Below are positions 1,740 to 58,731 of a stretch of 64,000 bases of DNA, piece after piece. The notes under the pieces are model-generated. The model saw only the letters and a program-made list of their open reading frames with translations. It made no database searches and had not been told where the DNA came from. Every line of letters starts with the position of its first letter. The stretch's first letter is position 1. The translations under genes and the position numbers were made by a program. The stretch spans positions 394,730 to 458,729 of IMG/VR virus record IMGVR_UViG_3300028920_000022. One strand, written 5' to 3'.

Positions 1740-3146
1740 ATGGGAAAATTGAAGGTGTGGAAAGTTGGCGCAGCTGGAGAACCCAGTTTTCCTGCCAATT
1801 TTGAGGTGGCTAAAAAAGCCGTTCTCCAAGTTACAGATATTAAAACAAATCGTAATAAGTATTATGCCATAGAACTACACTCTGCTGGCAATAAATATAG
1901 AGTGTTTACTCATTATGGTCGAACAGATGATCTGGACACGAATCCTAATGCTGGGGTGCGCGAGGTTCGTTACGGCAACTTGTCTGAATGTGAAGCAACC
2001 TATCATCAGATATATAGTCAAAAAACTAGCGCAAGAAAAGGATATAAGGAACTTAGCTTAGCATCTTCGCGTATTGGTTCGTCTCAATCGGTTGGTAAAT
2101 CTAGCGGACATGTTGATGACAAAACGCTTGAAAAACTAAACAACGGTAACAAGAAAGTGATAAAAAACAAAGTTTCTACACTTTCTCCCGTTGTACAAGA
2201 TTTTGTTTCTTATATTTATGCTGAAGCCACTAATGCCCTAACTAGCACAATTAATGCCAGCATTACCGCTAATGGTATCGAAACGCCTCTTGGTGTTTTG
2301 ACACTGGGTCAGATTGATAAGGGGCAAAAGATTTTGGATGAGCTTTATGATTTATTCAATTCAAAAAAGAGCCAATCAATACGTGACCATATGGTAGAAC
2401 TGAGTGGTGAGTTTTATACAGTAATTCCTCACAGAATAGGCAGAACTAGGGCTGCTGTAGAAGCTGCTGTTATTGATAGTTTAGTAGATTTTAATGCTAA
2501 GCAAGACACATTACAACTTATGCGAGACATGTTAAGTGTTTCGGGTAAAGACTCCCAGGTACTTATTAACCCTGAAATTGATAAGAAATATAATGCTTTG
2601 GGTTGCGAAATTAAAACTGTAGATAATAAAAAGTATCAAGAATTGAAGGATTATGTAGAGAAATCACAAATAAAAACCAGAAATATTAAAGTAAAGAATA
2701 TATATTCATTATGCAGACCAGAAGAACAAAAGGTTTTTGCTGATAATATTTCAAATAAACGATTACTTTTTCACGGTTCTAGGGCAAAAAACTGGGTAGG
2801 TATTCTTTCCCGTGGTTTGTTGCTTCCTAAGATTGTGGTTAGCTTGGGTGTAAACCGAACTGACGCAGGTTGGCTTGGAAATGGTATTTATTTCGGAGAT
2901 GCTGTTTGCACTACATTATACTACACGTCTCCTGGAAGGCAGAGAAACACCCGGATGATGGCGATAGCGAATGTAGCATTAGGAAAGATGAAGGATTTTA
3001 ATAGAATTACGTATGGATTAAAAGGACCACCCGCTGGATATCATAGTTGTCATGGTGTACGTGGAACCTCATTTGCAGATGATGAATATGTAATTTATGA
3101 CCAGAAACAGCAGAAACTTGAGTATTTAGTGGAGTATGTGTCATGA
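1740..3146 (+). CDS. Poly(ADP-ribose) polymerase-family protein (WGR + regulatory + catalytic domains)
   Basis: WGR-like NKYY.IELH...HYGR; helical regulatory domain (FYTVIPH); catalytic LLFHGS, GNGIYF, DEYVIYD (H-Y-E). Confidence 0.9.
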   Translation: MGKLKVWKVGAAGEPSFPANFEVAKKAVLQVTDIKTNRNKYYAIELHSAGNKYRVFTHYGRTDDLDTNPNAGVREVRYGNLSECEATYHQIYSQKTSARKGYKELSLASSRIGSSQSVGKSSGHVDDKTLEKLNNGNKKVIKNKVSTLSPVVQDFVSYIYAEATNALTSTINASITANGIETPLGVLTLGQIDKGQKILDELYDLFNSKKSQSIRDHMVELSGEFYTVIPHRIGRTRAAVEAAVIDSLVDFNAKQDTLQLMRDMLSVSGKDSQVLINPEIDKKYNALGCEIKTVDNKKYQELKDYVEKSQIKTRNIKVKNIYSLCRPEEQKVFADNISNKRLLFHGSRAKNWVGILSRGLLLPKIVVSLGVNRTDAGWLGNGIYFGDAVCTTLYYTSPGRQRNTRMMAIANVALGKMKDFNRITYGLKGPPAGYHSCHGVRGTSFADDEYVIYDQKQQKLEYLVEYVS

Positions 3147-3373
3147 GAACATCAGAACGTTTTAAAAATGCCCTTGTTGATTTTCCGGATATAGACGGTA
3201 TTCCCATCACATTTACACGTGACGAGCTGCGCATAATGCTGATGTTATGCCAGTCTGTAGAACAATTGTGTAACGAGGCGGAATCGTACATAGACATTGG
3301 GTTTGATACGGACAATGAATCGGTTCGTTTACGGGAAGCTGTGCGTATTGTTCGAGAAACATTGTATGAATAA
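3143..3373 (+). CDS. Hypothetical protein
   Basis: ATGA overlap with the PARP stop. Confidence 0.6.
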   Translation: MRTSERFKNALVDFPDIDGIPITFTRDELRIMLMLCQSVEQLCNEAESYIDIGFDTDNESVRLREAVRIVRETLYE

Positions 3374-3397
3374 TTGATTCAAAGGGGAAGAGCTGCT

Positions 3398-3670
3398 ATG
3401 ATTAAGTTCACACAATATTTGCGACCGAACGGAATTAAACAAGCGGTAGAAATCAAAAGACCCAAAGCTGTTGAAGAAATGGCGGATAAGATTATAGAAG
3501 CCGGAGGAGAGTTTGAGGTAGAGGTTTTAAGCACCGGTACAATTTCGTTGGAGGTGGTGCGGGAAAAAGATGGAGATATGGAAACGTTGTCTGCAGAAAT
3601 TTGTGACAATGGTCCTGCTGTTTTGATTGCCGTAGACAAACTGGTAAAAGCGGCTTTTGATGCTTGTTAA
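3398..3670 (+). CDS. Hypothetical phage protein
   Basis: GGGG SD-like site before ATG 3398; operon context. Confidence 0.6.
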   Translation: MIKFTQYLRPNGIKQAVEIKRPKAVEEMADKIIEAGGEFEVEVLSTGTISLEVVREKDGDMETLSAEICDNGPAVLIAVDKLVKAAFDAC

Positions 3671-3682
3671 GTTAGACGGGTT

Positions 3683-4309
3683 GTGGAGGAGTACATCATG
3701 AGTGCTGATTTTTCAAAATGCTGGTTCAATACTTGGGAAATAGAAGGATACATTAAATCACGCCCATGGCGTGATTGTTGGGGAAACCACCAACCAAACT
3801 TCAATTGTTTCTTTAGAAATAGTTGTGGCAAATTATTTCCAATGAACGATGCTGTTAAAGATGTCATGTCGTCCCACGCTCGTGAAATATTGAGCAGGCA
3901 TCCACAGGTTCAGTTGTCAGAGTTTTTGGCAAGATTAGAAGATTCAAACAATTACATCTCTTTGCGGGATGGAATACTAGAATGGAAACGTCAATGTTTT
4001 GAGGAATATAAAAAATCTTTGGAACAAGAAGAATGTTACATCAAACATGCCCTGAAATATGGATATGATAAAGTTTTAGAATTGCCCATAGAAGATCAGG
4101 AATCGATAGATTTTACAGAAGGATCTGTGTTGTTGGAAGATGGCAAATTCTCTACCACCTTTCGCGATCATAATGGTGATATTTTTATCATAAGTGGCGA
4201 CACTGAGTTACCTCTTTCGATTAAAGAAGAATTTTTGAGCACCTATAATGGGCTAGGATCTGCCCAATATTCAGAAAACAGCGAGAAGCCCGAAGATGAT
4301 CAAAGATGA
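3683..4309 (+). CDS. Hypothetical protein
   Basis: Long ORF; GGAGGAG SD before ATG 3698. Confidence 0.65.
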   Translation: MEEYIMSADFSKCWFNTWEIEGYIKSRPWRDCWGNHQPNFNCFFRNSCGKLFPMNDAVKDVMSSHAREILSRHPQVQLSEFLARLEDSNNYISLRDGILEWKRQCFEEYKKSLEQEECYIKHALKYGYDKVLELPIEDQESIDFTEGSVLLEDGKFSTTFRDHNGDIFIISGDTELPLSIKEEFLSTYNGLGSAQYSENSEKPEDDQR

Positions 4310-27013: not shown

Positions 27014-27259
27014 TTATTTGTAGTTTTTCCAATCTGCGGTAGATTTGAAGATTGGTGGATTTTGTTTTTCTTTTTTGACTCTTTGTTCGCTTTCTTGTTT
27101 AAGGCGGGCGATTTCTTTTGCTGCGATTTGATCCAGATATCCGCACATATCGCATGCATACCCTGGAGTATATATTCCCAGATATTGTCCTTTAGTTGGG
27201 TAGCCACATTTGGGACAATCTTCGTTACTAGCGGTGTGATATTTTTTGAACCAAGACAT
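27014..27259 (-). CDS. Small zinc-ribbon protein
   Basis: CPKC...CDMC. Confidence 0.6.
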   Translation of the reverse strand: MSWFKKYHTASNEDCPKCGYPTKGQYLGIYTPGYACDMCGYLDQIAAKEIARLKQESEQRVKKEKQNPPIFKSTADWKNYK

Positions 27260-27270
27260 TTTGACCTTTG

Positions 27271-27525
27271 TTATGTAATTATGTTCTGAATTATAAAATC
27301 ATTACAATTTATTTGTTCAGGATTCAATGCCGTAGCAATACTTATCTGAGAAATATAAAAATTTATTTCATTTTGAAATATTCCTTTAAATATTATTAAT
27401 CCGCAATTCTGGCATTGCCAATATTTTGGACGAATATCGTTAATCAAATTAATACCATCATTAAGTTTTGCAACCTCTTCTGCTGTTAACTCCTTCAGTT
27501 CGTGTGTACCTATTTTGAGACTCAT
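27271..27525 (-). CDS. Small Cys protein, IKDIIE family
   Basis: YWQCQNC; PEQINC; ends IIQNIIT. Confidence 0.6.
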   Translation of the reverse strand: MSLKIGTHELKELTAEEVAKLNDGINLINDIRPKYWQCQNCGLIIFKGIFQNEINFYISQISIATALNPEQINCNDFIIQNIIT

Positions 27526-56160: not shown

Positions 56161-56574
56161 CTATTTTATTACGTCCTCGATGATGAAGTTATTTTTCCAC
56201 CCATTGAACCACTTTTCGGCTTTTCTCATGCATAAAATCATGTCAAGTTCGACATTGGAAATGGCTTGGAGTCGGTTGAACCAGTCTAAAAACAATTCAC
56301 GAAAATCTTCGTTTATCTCTTCTGATTTTGTAACAGTGTAAGTTAATTTTCCAGGAATAATTTCATCACTTTTGCAAAACAAAGCAACCTCTAATTTATG
56401 TGCGTAGTGTTCAGGATTAGGATCATCGTAGTATCTTGTCCCTGATACCACTTCTGGAATTAATCTGTACAGGTGCATGTTTAAAACATAACCCGGGCAA
56501 TATATGGAAAACTCTGACCGATCAGCTTTTTGACCGCCTCTGTTTATGTTGATGGTAGTTATATATGGTTTCAC
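56161..56574 (-). CDS. Hypothetical protein, IKDIIE-like end
   Basis: Ends FIIEDVIK. Confidence 0.55.
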   Translation of the reverse strand: MKPYITTININRGGQKADRSEFSIYCPGYVLNMHLYRLIPEVVSGTRYYDDPNPEHYAHKLEVALFCKSDEIIPGKLTYTVTKSEEINEDFRELFLDWFNRLQAISNVELDMILCMRKAEKWFNGWKNNFIIEDVIK

Positions 56575-56833
56575 TTTTCCTCGGAAAATGTTTGTACCAA
56601 GCGATTACAGCTACAATGGAAAAATTCATCACATAATTAACCATCAGCACAAAGTCAGAAGAATAATTAGCTAGAGTATAGCAAATATAGCAGAACTCTC
56701 CAATCAGCCAAAGCCAAATTGTGAGGGTCGCCATCCCATTAGCATGTCCTTCTTTTATGGCTTTCAGCATCTGCGGAAGCCCAGAGAAGGAAAAGCATAC
56801 CATACCGATAAGCCCAACTACCACTAAATTCAT
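56522..56833 (-). CDS. PQ-loop/SemiSWEET-like membrane protein
   Basis: GLIG..CF....LPQM.K..K.G.A.G; three TM helices. Confidence 0.75.
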   Translation of the reverse strand: MNLVVVGLIGMVCFSFSGLPQMLKAIKEGHANGMATLTIWLWLIGEFCYICYTLANYSSDFVLMVNYVMNFSIVAVIAWYKHFPRKSETIYNYHQHKQRRSKS

Positions 56834-56860
56834 AACGATAAATGGACAAAAATTAGTAGG

Positions 56861-56933
56861 CGGGTCCTGCGAGATTTGAACTCGCGTCTAAAAGCTTTAA
56901 AGGCTTTCGCTCTCGCCGCTGAGCTAAGGACCC
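56861..56933 (-). tRNA. Ochre suppressor tRNA (anticodon TTA), Lys-like body
   Basis: GGGTCCT/AGGACCC acceptor, GCTC/GAGC D-stem, AAAGC-CTTTAAA-GCTTT anticodon arm, GCGAG-TTCAAAT-CTCGC T-arm, G73. Confidence 0.92.
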
Positions 56934-57253
56934 AGAGCCAAATTAAGTTTGCTACATAGCTTCTTAGATTTCCTACCGGGCTCTAAAGCAATTGCTGTAA
57001 TCTCATCATCGAAATCTGGTTCTCTAAATATAGAAAACTTGATTTCCTTTTCTTTCGCCAATCCCATCAATTCCTTTAAACTATTCTCGTTTTCTGTTTC
57101 TAATATAACTAAGTAGTTTGAGGAATTGAACCACAACAAATCTTCCTGCGGATGATCGTTTACGAAAGCTCTCAGTGCATGACAGGATTGTGCTGCCCTA
57201 GCTCCTGGGGAAAGGTCTGTTCTAGTGACAATATACAGTTTGTTTTAAGCCAT
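56924..57253 (-). CDS. Peptidyl-tRNA hydrolase II-like protein with in-frame TAA at codon 3
   Basis: GAGGA SD; ATG GCT TAA AAC AAA CTG TAT ATT...; KLYIVTRTDL.PG..AAQSCHA, YLVIL, FREPD, TAIAL motifs. Confidence 0.82.
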
Positions 57254-57254
57254 G

Positions 57255-57788
57255 TCAATCCTCGTCATCGTAGTCTGATTCTTCCGCAATTTCTTTCCGT
57301 TCTTGAGCACACGCCCTGAAATAACTGGATATCCTTTCTACTATAGTTTCTGGAATGTCTTGTTTACGAAACTTTTCTTTCCACCCTTCGTATGGTGTGT
57401 CGCCAGAAATCCAATGTCTTTCTCCAACAGTAAAACAGGGAGGGTCGCTATATATCCGACCTAAATCTGTTTCAATATATGGCCAAATCTCAAGTGGTGA
57501 GTCATTACAGCAGCCGCAGTTGTGTCTAATTTCGCAATCATTGACTCGGTTATTGAGTGAAGCAGAACAAAACCTTTCAGTTTTCCACCTATTTATATGA
57601 CGGCGCAAATCCGGGTATTTTTCGCTTCTTTTTATAAGCAAGTCTAGTTCTTGTTGTTTTTTCTGGACCTCTTTTTCTAATTCGTCTATTATACCCGGAA
57701 TACTGTCTTTCCAATTTTGGTATTCCCGTTGTTCTTCGGGGGTCATTTTAAAGTAGTCTTTGTCGGTATATTTGCTGTAGTCTTTCAT
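57255..57788 (-). CDS. Hypothetical protein
   Basis: RHNCGCC.DSPLE..PY motif; ATGA-coupled to the upstream gene. Confidence 0.7.
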   Translation of the reverse strand: MKDYSKYTDKDYFKMTPEEQREYQNWKDSIPGIIDELEKEVQKKQQELDLLIKRSEKYPDLRRHINRWKTERFCSASLNNRVNDCEIRHNCGCCNDSPLEIWPYIETDLGRIYSDPPCFTVGERHWISGDTPYEGWKEKFRKQDIPETIVERISSYFRACAQERKEIAEESDYDDED

Positions 57789-58108
57789 GCTGCCTCCTGA
57801 GATATTCTGTTAATTCGTACAAAGAGCCAATCACGAACTTCCTTCCACTCAGGTCCTGAAACAGAAAACTCAATATCAGAGGCTCTGCAAATATATTTTG
57901 CAATATCTAGAGCCAATCCGGTATAAAACGTAGTCCTTCCAGTTGAGCAATGTTTGTCTTCGTTCGTGGTTCGTTCCATAACCTCATAAGGCAAACCACG
58001 CAAAAAACCATATGCCAACAATCTACAGCGTTGTTTCCAACCGCCAGCTTTAGCACCTTCAATCACCCAAAGTCTAAGTTGAGCAATAGCATTTTTTCTT
58101 GTATTCAT
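57785..58108 (-). CDS. Hypothetical phage protein (first gene of the pth operon)
   Basis: AGGAG SD; RCRLLAYGFLRG.PYE..E motif. Confidence 0.7.
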   Translation of the reverse strand: MNTRKNAIAQLRLWVIEGAKAGGWKQRCRLLAYGFLRGLPYEVMERTTNEDKHCSTGRTTFYTGLALDIAKYICRASDIEFSVSGPEWKEVRDWLFVRINRISQEAA

Positions 58109-58124
58109 GTCAATCTCCTAAAAA

Positions 58125-58202
58125 TCAAAAAGTTACAAACAGTTTTTCTGGAAACTTTTGTTTAGGAGGTCCACGAATTTGATTAATTTACGAGTCGTGC
58201 AT
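58125..58202 (-). promoter_or_regulatory. Leader uORF MHDS*INQIRGPPKQKFPEKLFVTF* (ochre + RGPP arrest-like motif) with attenuator-like hairpin
   Basis: Translation of 58202-58125; TAA at 58190-58188; CAAAAGTT...AACTTTTTG pairing followed by a T-rich run and the SD. Confidence 0.65.
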
Positions 58203-58242: not shown

Positions 58243-58731
58243 TCATCTATGGACCCTATTAATTGCCACATCTGGCTTATCTGGCTTATCTGGCTTATCT
58301 GGCTTATCAGGTTTATCAGGTTTGTCTGGCAAAACAGGTGCAGGTTTATCTACGGAAGCCGTTCCAATAGCTTTAATTTTCTTATCTTTATTATTTTGAA
58401 ATGTTGTCAAACGAGTATCTATTTTTTCTTGAAACAAATTTATAATATCAAGAACATCTTGTTGTCTAGGTCTTTCTGGTAGTGGAATTTGCCGCATTTC
58501 TAGGTAACTATTGTTTAGCTCCTGTTTAATATTATTACAACAGCCAGACTGTATTTGGTTGTATAAAAGCATTAAATCTACTAATGCAGCTTTTGCGTCT
58601 TTATCTAAATTATCTTGTTTTACACCGTATATTCTTCTTCCAATGATTTTGCGCAAACTTTTGTATCCGGCAAGTAGCCTATTTCCGCTTCTTATCGTAT
58701 TTAGAATAATTATTTTATTTTTGGTGTTCAT
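58243..58731 (-). CDS. Hypothetical protein with PDK repeats
   Basis: ATGA-coupled. Confidence 0.6.
   Translation of the reverse strand: MNTKNKIIILNTIRSGNRLLAGYKSLRKIIGRRIYGVKQDNLDKDAKAALVDLMLLYNQIQSGCCNNIKQELNNSYLEMRQIPLPERPRQQDVLDIINLFQEKIDTRLTTFQNNKDKKIKAIGTASVDKPAPVLPDKPDKPDKPDKPDKPDKPDVAINRVHR
58271..58330. repeat. 9-bp tandem repeat (TCTGGCTTA)n encoding PDK
   Basis: About 6.7 units. Confidence 0.9.

Follow-up and report, generated by a model that had tools for sequence, protein, structure and literature searches.

Arrest peptides of the RAPP type (ApdA, ApdP, ApcA; SecM relatives) are encoded by small upstream open reading frames (ORFs) that end in R-A/G-P-P, and the arrested ribosome is thought to free the ribosome binding site (RBS) of a downstream gene. 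The RAPP and RGPP motifs are the most robust ribosome-arrest cores, and elongation factor P (EF-P) gives no relief from them (PMC12992588). In prfB, the gene for release factor 2 (RF2), a stop codon early in the coding sequence ties output to the efficiency of termination. Lak, crAss-like and other recoded phages carry suppressor tRNAs, and in-frame stops have been proposed to delay expression there for as long as the tRNA is inactive; in Jade phages the code change module consists of a tRNA, a synthetase and a release factor (bioRxiv 10.1101/2021.08.26.457843). How a phage senses or times a change of its code is asked in the abstract of the theta-ribozyme paper PMC10879173, and the Borges preprint models recoding without a sensor. 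Here we describe an operon in a 64 kb stretch (the window) of the 458,729-bp viral contig IMGVR_UViG_3300028920_000022. This operon contains a leader with an early in-frame TAA followed by an RGPP motif, a gene for a protein with the Pth2 fold that has a TAA at codon 3, and a tRNA with anticodon UUA. We propose, with moderate confidence, that it senses, at the level of translation, the recoding tRNA encoded by the phage itself, through two stop-codon gates arranged in series. The proposal builds on the anatomy of the operon, its conservation, the covariation of gate codon and anticodon, a context that favors suppression and a predicted base pairing; read-through, arrest, unmasking and the roles of the proteins would follow from these.

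Two in-frame ochre codons and a cognate tRNA in one operon

The five elements of the operon are located on the minus strand between positions 58202 and 56859, in the order leader, 107-aa gene (p107), 177-aa gene (p177), Pth2-like gene and tRNA(UUA) (Table 1), in base-for-base agreement with an earlier note on this DNA. The leader, 25 codons in all, reads ATG CAC GAC TCG TAA ATT AAT CAA ATT CGT GGA CCT CCT (M-H-D-S-stop-I-N-Q-I-R-G-P-P). Four residues precede its stop, and the RGPP codons (CGT GGA CCT CCT) are at positions 58175-58164. The stop codon of p107 and the start codon of p177 overlap in the sequence ATGA. The ATG of the Pth2-like gene lies 4 nt from the p177 stop (junction TGA-C-ATG), with the sequence GAGGA 5 nt ahead of it; 106 sense codons follow the TAA, and the first canonical start codon after it is 35 codons in. 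The last codons of this gene are overlapped by that of tRNA(UUA), which has an acceptor stem of 7 bp, an anticodon stem of 5 bp, the loop C-U-UUA-A-A with UUA at position 34, and G73; its 3' CCA is encoded only in part. What marks it as a nonsense suppressor is that it is a canonical tRNA with a stop-cognate anticodon and that two cognate in-frame stops are present in the same operon. It would read UAA and possibly, by wobble, UAG. Residues G73, G2:C71, G3:C70, G10, U35 and A37 fit the identity set of the E. coli glutaminyl-tRNA synthetase (GlnRS), but the 1:72 pair is G:C.

Table 1. Position and main characteristics of the features of the operon.
Feature	Position in window	Strand	Characteristics
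Leader upstream ORF	58125..58202	-	ATG 58202-58200; TAA 58190-58188 (codon 5); read-through stop TGA 58127-58125
Predicted hairpin	58103..58178	-	leader codons pair with Shine-Dalgarno sequence and start codon of p107
p107 (107-aa gene)	57785..58108	-	all-helical; motif LLAYxFLRGxPY
p177 (177-aa gene)	57255..57788	-	Cys-rich
Pth2-fold gene, gated	56924..57253	-	ATG 57253-57251, GCT, TAA 57247-57245, coding 57244-56927, TAG 56926-56924
tRNA, anticodon UUA	56859..56933	-	ARAGORN perfect cloverleaf; Rfam tRNA 71.5 bits

The window contains 25 cases of an ATG followed by one to six codons, a stop and an ORF of 60 or more codons (8 TAA, 9 TAG and 8 TGA), and among these cases only the Pth2-like gene combines a Shine-Dalgarno (SD) sequence, a purine 3' of the stop and a long stretch free of start codons. 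Relatives of this gene were collected by a profile search of IMG/VR (80 loci) and by a scan of metagenomes with the single protein (11 loci, a few of them new); the loci span 6 kb, and tRNAs farther off fall outside. Among 72 distinct phage Pth2-like genes 45 were gated, that is, the ATG is followed by one to five codons and a stop, after which the conserved N-terminus resumes; six genes were ambiguous and 21 ungated. The gate stop was TAG in 43 genes, and TAA and TGA in one gene each. The gate is specific to its position: the other Gln codons, of which each gene has 3 to 11, are CAA or CAG. Ungated homologues carry Gln at the gate position (M-S-L-Q-I-K... or M-Q-I-Q-S-G...). Further internal TAG or TGA codons were found in the Pth2-like gene of a few loci (L011, L071/72, L076, L034 and L048).

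Early in-frame stops might also be sequencing or assembly errors, or mark a pseudogene decaying beside a tRNA, and the window does derive from a single metagenomic assembly, the IMG/VR and JGI records being the same contig. However, equivalent stops are present in dozens of independent assemblies as well as in cultured phages, and the protein encoded after the stop is fully conserved and gives a model with a predicted local distance difference test (pLDDT) score of 96. Assembly error is excluded because both stops are conserved in relatives, and the probability that we assign to artefact or decay is negligible. As judged by comparison of the sequences, the two-stop arrangement is neither chance nor assembly error. 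The homologue search that the earlier note had called for thus showed that early stops, suppressor tRNAs and RGPP leaders recur in many phages, and the gated design is widespread and not unique to the window, which the earlier note had missed.

Cultured phages with a member of the Pth2-like family include about 200 cluster C mycobacteriophages, in which it is annotated as 'peptidyl tRNA hydrolase', Aeromonas phages, Prevotella Lak phages and Xanthomonas phage XacN1. In Mycobacterium phage Bxz1 (L093; NC_004687.1, 92280-97591), the Pth2-like gene, gp154, reads ATG TAG GTG... and gp153 is headed by ATG TTT TAG GTG... (L093 2090-2480 for this region). A tRNA(CUA) that is annotated only as 'tRNA-like product' is located 300 nt downstream (L093 3157-3229).

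The gate codon changes together with the anticodon of the local tRNA. Where the window has TAA in the leader, TAA in the Pth2-like gene and tRNA(UUA), its nearest relatives, L083 (76% identity) and L002 (68%; same gene order), have TAG, TAG and tRNA(CUA). In both, the TAG of the Pth2-like gene is at codon 3, the tRNA(CUA) follows right after this gene, and the leader is of the form M-K-D-S-TAG-I-...-I-R-G-P-P. Fifteen distinct leaders have a suppressor tRNA in their locus, and in 14 of them the anticodon is exactly cognate to the leader stop (permutation p=0.002; TAG/CUA eleven times, TAA/UUA twice and TGA/UCA once). The exception combines TAG with UUA, which wobble permits. Locus L043 has a TAA leader and tRNA(UUA), and L048 a TGA leader and two copies of tRNA(UCA). 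The commonest tRNA in the loci is tRNA(CUA), with 60 genes versus 15 for the next type, nearly always downstream and on the same strand. A suppressor tRNA was found within 3 kb in 34 of the 45 gated and in 6 of the 21 ungated Pth2-like loci (p=4e-4). The view expressed in the earlier note that the two ochre codons and the tRNA form one functional unit is therefore borne out, since codon and anticodon change together at both gates.

The suppressor tRNAs of the relatives are of quite different types, some with long variable arms; what is conserved is therefore the relation between codon and anticodon, and not the lineage of the tRNA or the amino acid that it inserts. A relation conserved without a conserved tRNA fits a gate placed in a tolerant N-terminal position. 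In two loci the Pth2-like gene is directly followed by a tRNA-like sequence not called by ARAGORN. In L003 (3331-3407) this is a tRNA with anticodon CUA whose T-loop is aberrant; in L004 (3331-3453) the acceptor and T arms are separated by about 120 nt, in the manner of an interrupted tRNA. The second most frequent tRNA type in the relatives' loci is tRNA-Thr; several jumbo-phage relatives carry three tRNA-Thr genes and a transfer-messenger RNA (tmRNA; tag ANDNAAPMALAA) a few kb upstream of the gated Pth2-like gene (L003 814-1711, L004 419-634).

A further kind of pairing was found in GC-rich relatives without stop-suppressor tRNAs. Here the leader ORF (M-x-x-F-L) ends at TGA, invariably within CTC TGA A, and RGPP is encoded in the +1 frame, a frame that lacks its own start. 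These loci (L023, L026, L027, L032, L039 and L045) have tRNAs about 1-1.8 kb 3' of the Pth2-like gene whose anticodon loop is 8 nt long and whose anticodon, UUCA, has four bases and is cognate to UGAA. Decoding of UGAA as one codon would shift the ribosome into the RGPP frame, and by their sequence the UGAA leaders and UUCA tRNAs look like natural pairs of quadruplet codon and frameshift suppressor. Recoding tRNAs of four kinds are thus accompanied by gates that match them. The quadruplet observation extends to L094 (2300-2520), an independent Logan contig.

Nonsense suppressors act best when the stop is followed by a purine, above all A. The base 3' of the gate in the 45 gated Pth2-like genes was A in 36 cases, G in nine and never C or T, as compared to 51% purine after the true terminators of the same loci (p=8e-14). 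The classical context for efficient suppression of nonsense codons, reportedly described by Bossi (1983) and by Miller & Albertini (1983), is such a 3' purine.

The codon after the gate bears on another explanation, in which the short frame is a true mini-ORF of two to five codons and ribosomes re-initiate, without any suppression, at a near-cognate AUU, AUC or CUG just past the stop. This codon is Ile in 30 of the 45 gated genes (ATT 24, ATC 4 and ATA 2), and AUU can initiate. In addition, the stop is directly followed in Bxz1-type phages by a GTG that is the annotated start. The bar minigenes of phage lambda resemble ATG-x-stop, and minigenes and Pth are linked in lambda biology. However, none of the codons found at this place in the window, L002 and L083 (AAC, AAT or AAA) is start-like. 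Moreover, the Ile belongs to the conserved N-terminus and is also present after M-x-x-Q in ungated homologues. Since re-initiation also leaves unexplained both the match of stop and anticodon and the presence of the same gate in the RGPP leaders, we consider it very improbable.

The leader peptide and the proposed circuit

The earlier note had singled out the RGPP of the leader, and a frame encoding R-[G/A]-P-P (once RSPP) was indeed found ahead of all 23 distinct p107 genes, in most cases at a distance of 56-81 nt from the start codon. The codons vary synonymously (CGT, CGA, CGC or AGA for Arg; GGN or GCN; CCN for Pro), and selection therefore acts on the leader peptide. The gated form, M-x(1-5)-stop-x(1-10)-R[GAS]PP, was present in 19 distinct loci, in 18 of which a purine follows the stop, and several leaders terminate right after the R-[G/A]-P-P motif. 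We conclude that the leader is a real, conserved regulatory peptide. In an Rfam search of 3 kb it had no match, the tRNA being the sole real one.

The predicted fold of the window RNA links this peptide to the expression of p107. The segments AUUCGUG and CCUCCUAAA, which contain the Ile-Arg and Pro-Pro-Lys codons, pair with UUUAGGAG (the SD sequence of p107) and CAUGAAU (its start), and the same fold is predicted for the leader of L002. The same long-range pairing was found in the minimum free energy fold of 17 of the 23 leaders, compared with 8.5% of 260 control gene starts with the same spacing (p=4e-12). The earlier note had not proposed this hairpin. A block of 13 nt, AACTGTTTGTAAC, located between RGPP and the RBS of p107 (58130-58142, minus strand), is identical in the window, L002 and L083, with flanks that differ; it falls in the inner stem-loop of the predicted hairpin.

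Based on these features we propose the following circuit. In the absence of suppression, leader ribosomes would terminate at the UAA at codon 5. This would leave the 5' strand of the hairpin uncovered, and the SD sequence and AUG of p107 would be kept paired with the RGPP-coding segment. Upon suppression, read-through would lead to arrest at RGPP. With the first Pro codon in the P site, the arrested ribosome would occlude the entire 5' strand of the hairpin, so that the SD sequence and AUG of p107 become free. Unmasked p107 would then be translated, and p177 would follow by coupling through the ATGA overlap. The Pth2-like gene, the second gate, would need another read-through event at its codon 3, and the amount of its product should therefore increase steeply, about as the square of the suppression efficiency. 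As a guess, the Pth2-fold enzyme might clear the peptidyl- or acyl-tRNA by-products of a suppressor that competes with release factors, being made on demand. Other possibilities are that it resets the arrested leader, or that p107 acts on termination itself. The positive feedback that the earlier note had envisaged does not follow from this arrangement: the tRNA is not gated at the level of translation, and an extra step such as relief of transcriptional polarity would be needed.

For the relatives, we consider it an evenly balanced matter whether a dedicated circuit for measuring the activity of a recoding tRNA is common to the phages that have such a tRNA. In this circuit a cognate-gated leader (amber, ochre, opal or quadruplet UGAA) and RGPP arrest would turn on p107 and an equally gated Pth2-fold enzyme.

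The same architecture could have a different input. The earlier note took failure of termination by the host's release factor 1 (RF1) or RF2 as the trigger. The operon would then sense the activity of these factors (depleted, inhibited or outcompeted), and p107 and the Pth2-like protein would rescue ribosomes stuck at stops. By construction a gate is a competition between release factor and tRNA and reports their ratio. Three loci (L055, L057 and L034) have a gated leader and no suppressor tRNA within their 6 kb. Furthermore, the logic of an early stop resembles prfB autoregulation, and a Pth fold makes a sensible output for failed termination. On the other hand, the gate codon varies with the kind of tRNA encoded nearby, even to the quadruplet with its four-base anticodon, and a pure release-factor sensor needs no such match. 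Both RF1 and RF2 recognize UAA, so that an ochre gate is a poor sensor of either, and the tRNA is almost always encoded in the gated unit itself. The comparative signal thus points to the phage's own recoding tRNA, and we regard RF1/RF2 activity as an unlikely trigger, while noting that the two inputs are inseparable by sequence.

Several points weigh against a sensor of the recoding tRNA. Read-through, arrest and unmasking are predictions from anatomy. The z-scores of single-leader folds are modest (-1.3 and -1.9), and the Pro-Pro codons by themselves account for some of the hairpin signal, because any CCUCC pairs with any SD sequence. The leader lacks a clear SD sequence of its own, and with about 10-25 residues such leaders are far shorter than the characterized RAPP peptides. 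An efficient ochre suppressor would be costly because TAA still ends about a third of the phage genes. The suppressor tRNAs of the window, L083 and L002 cannot be aligned as close homologues; therefore the covariation between these loci reflects replacement of the tRNA and not a C34-to-U point change. In addition, 11 of the 45 gated loci have no suppressor tRNA within 3 kb. Finally, the loci are phylogenetically related, so that the p-values given here are indicative and overstate independence.

Stop-codon use and the proteins of the operon

A tRNA that reads UAA raises the question of whether TAA is simply reassigned to Gln throughout this phage, as TAG is in Lak and crAss-like phages, in which case the two TAAs would be only two among many recoded codons, without regulatory meaning. 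The ungated homologues with Gln at the gate, and the several relatives with extra internal stops, are what ordinary reassignment would predict, as is the use of terminators: TAG is rare as a terminator in TAG-gated loci, and TAA terminators are depleted in the window. Thus, window genes of at least 80 aa end in TGA 41 times, in TAA 26 times and in TAG 18 times, which is unusual for 38% GC; TAA accounts for 31% of these terminators versus 56% in GC-matched TAG-gated loci (p=3e-4), and 48% of the larger window genes end in TGA, the sole stop that a UUA anticodon cannot read. Depletion of TAA is also what a functioning ochre suppressor should select for. However, the window is densely coding in the standard code, with phage genes that include one for a baseplate-hub/lysozyme protein. 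Of its 105 genes 36 end in TAA, interruptions are confined to the operon, and in ORF statistics computed under four codes the real window genes gain no length when TAA is read as sense. Also, the relatives have their stop at codon 3-5, and Gln is otherwise encoded by CAA or CAG throughout the gene. ORF statistics, gene map and a scan for gated genes all singled out only this operon, and genome-wide reassignment of TAA was rejected within these 64 of 458 kb; for the phage as a whole we hold it to be very improbable. Two in-frame runs of ORFs separated by TAA, at 3143-4309 (plus strand) and 27014-27525 (minus strand), turned out to be separate small genes with their own starts. In the 6-kb loci of the relatives, coding density is too noisy to assign the code of individual relatives.

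The Pth2-like gene matches the Pfam profile PTH2 (PF01981; E=1.2e-10; 42.1 bits versus a cut-off of 23) over profile positions 2-104 of 115, and the first residue matched is the second one after the TAA. Solved Pth2 structures are matched in turn by a profile of the family (2zv3, E=2e-10). The AlphaFold model (pLDDT 96.4) was matched by Foldseek to archaeal and human Pth2 (2zv3, 1q7s, 1wn2, 3erj and 1xty) with template modeling (TM) scores of 0.76-0.80 and a probability of 1.00. By this structural modeling, the Pth2 fold of the gated product is beyond doubt, in agreement with the output gene put forward in the earlier note. The peptidyl-tRNA recycling that the note assigned to it fared less well, because the family is too far from archaeal Pth2 for the equivalog models, which failed (26.7 bits versus 126 for NF003314 and 21.4 versus 82 for TIGR00283), and because the position of the catalytic Lys is not conserved. 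Sulfolobus Pth2 reportedly has a catalytic Lys and a catalytic Asp. When the phage family was aligned to 2zv3, the Asp of R-D-A-G fell on an invariant Glu (R-E-P-D), and the Lys of G-K-G-K fell on a variable position, which is Ala in the window and Tyr in most members; the phage family has four residues fewer in the loop following the G-K-G-K position. The protein, which belongs to phrog_1866, is thus, on the evidence of these profiles and alignments, a divergent phage member of the Pth2 superfamily with a putative activity.

An iterative hidden Markov model placed homologues of p107 immediately 5' of the Pth2-like gene in 29 of 81 loci, and the p107 family comprises 3136 cluster representatives. 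In an unrelated representative, on the independent Logan contig L094, a PTH2 gene likewise comes next downstream. On this contig the pair is followed by a gene for a protein with a tRNA-binding domain (PF01588; L094 3220-3588), and NAMPT/NAPRTase, dual-specificity phosphatase and Macro domain genes lie upstream. p107 had no match in Pfam, PHROG, NCBIfam or PADLOC, and a fold search of PDB and BFVD with its usable model (pLDDT 75) was negative. The C-terminus of most p107 proteins is -E-x-A-A (QEAA, EVAA, EKAA, GRAA; window 57788-57800); by analogy with the Ala-Ala of the ssrA tag, which this C-terminus resembles, p107 may be short-lived. p177, for which Pfam, PHROG, NCBIfam and PADLOC gave no match, is present only in L001, L002, L007 and L034 and is therefore a later insertion in one subclade.

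Directly 3' of the tRNA lies the gene for a PQ-loop/SemiSWEET-like membrane protein of 103 aa (PF04193, E=3e-11; 56525-56833, minus strand), which is absent from this position in L002. Upstream of the operon, a 162-aa protein (58243-58731, minus strand) has a C-terminal tandem P-D-K repeat, PDKPDKPDKPDKPDKPD (about 58275-58330), and no counterpart between the equivalent genes of L002. Scans of the locus for promoters and terminators gave nothing above chance. A sigma-70-like site, TTGACA-17-TATATT (11/12; 57258-57230, minus strand), at the start of the Pth2-like gene would yield a tRNA-only transcript; it is probably a coincidence because it is built from the TGA-C-ATG junction and conserved Leu-Tyr-Ile codons, and its -35 part is absent in L002. 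In a nucleotide search, 5 kb around the locus had no match among 50,697 phage records.

Comparison with known systems

If the proposed circuit is real, a leader that is read only by the phage's own suppressor and then arrests the ribosome would be a sensor of code change, and the circuit could be what triggers a phage's switch of code or commits the phage to it, a device long sought. The window would hold a rare natural ochre (UAA) version in an otherwise standard-code genome and would show a UAA-reading tRNA at work there, and the GC-rich relatives would be natural users of quadruplet decoding. The p107 and phage Pth2-like families would be tied to stop-codon suppression. Phages of the Bxz1 group, which infect Mycobacterium smegmatis, offer a tractable system in which genetics is possible. 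The earlier note knew of no system with this architecture; likewise, we found no prior description that combines a leader gate cognate to a tRNA encoded in cis, an arrest motif and a gated Pth2-fold gene, the literature accessible to us being incomplete.

The predicted hairpin fits the model for RAPP-type peptides, in which arrest frees a downstream RBS. Those peptides are longer, are encoded in bacterial genomes, are themselves secreted or membrane 'monitoring substrates' and are released by pulling force. Here, in contrast, the leader is encoded by a phage, has about 10-25 residues and has a stop or quadruplet before the motif. This in-frame stop or quadruplet means that arrest would occur only after a recoding event. 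An N-terminal signal or membrane segment and an association with Sec/YidC, as expected of RAPP-like peptides, were not found, and the downstream genes are p107, p177 and the Pth2-like gene, not localization machinery. RAPP and RGPP peptides do occur upstream of other functions too, and the survey of arrest peptides makes no mention of phages, stop codons or hydrolases (PMC12992588). The window leader would thus add phages to the range of RAPP/RGPP arrest peptides, and decoding, in place of protein export, to the inputs that these peptides respond to.

Like prfB, the operon uses an early stop within coding sequence; the GC-rich relatives resemble prfB also in the +1 shift, at CTC-TGA-A, whereas the window gate is in frame. 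In prfB, however, the product is the stop-reading factor and the bypass is a spontaneous frameshift, while here the bypass would depend on a dedicated neighboring tRNA encoded in cis and the product has the Pth2 fold. In the recoded phages surveyed, only TAG-to-Gln and TGA-to-Trp changes were described, across many late genes, and the survey makes no mention of Pth2, arrest leaders or position-specific gates (bioRxiv 10.1101/2021.08.26.457843); the window differs in that it lacks general recoding and that its codon is TAA. In AMD1, as here, read-through of a stop leads the ribosome onto a regulatory arrest sequence (PMC13025110). That system is eukaryotic and depends on near-cognate tRNAs, its stall represses its own mRNA, and no downstream cistron is unmasked.

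Arrest leaders, prfB-type early stops, phage suppressor tRNAs and engineered amber switches are each known singly. In the engineered switches, an amber codon in a leader or early in a gene makes expression conditional on an orthogonal suppressor that reads the early UAG (PMC6412442). The window operon appears to be a natural counterpart of these switches, coupled to an arrest motif.

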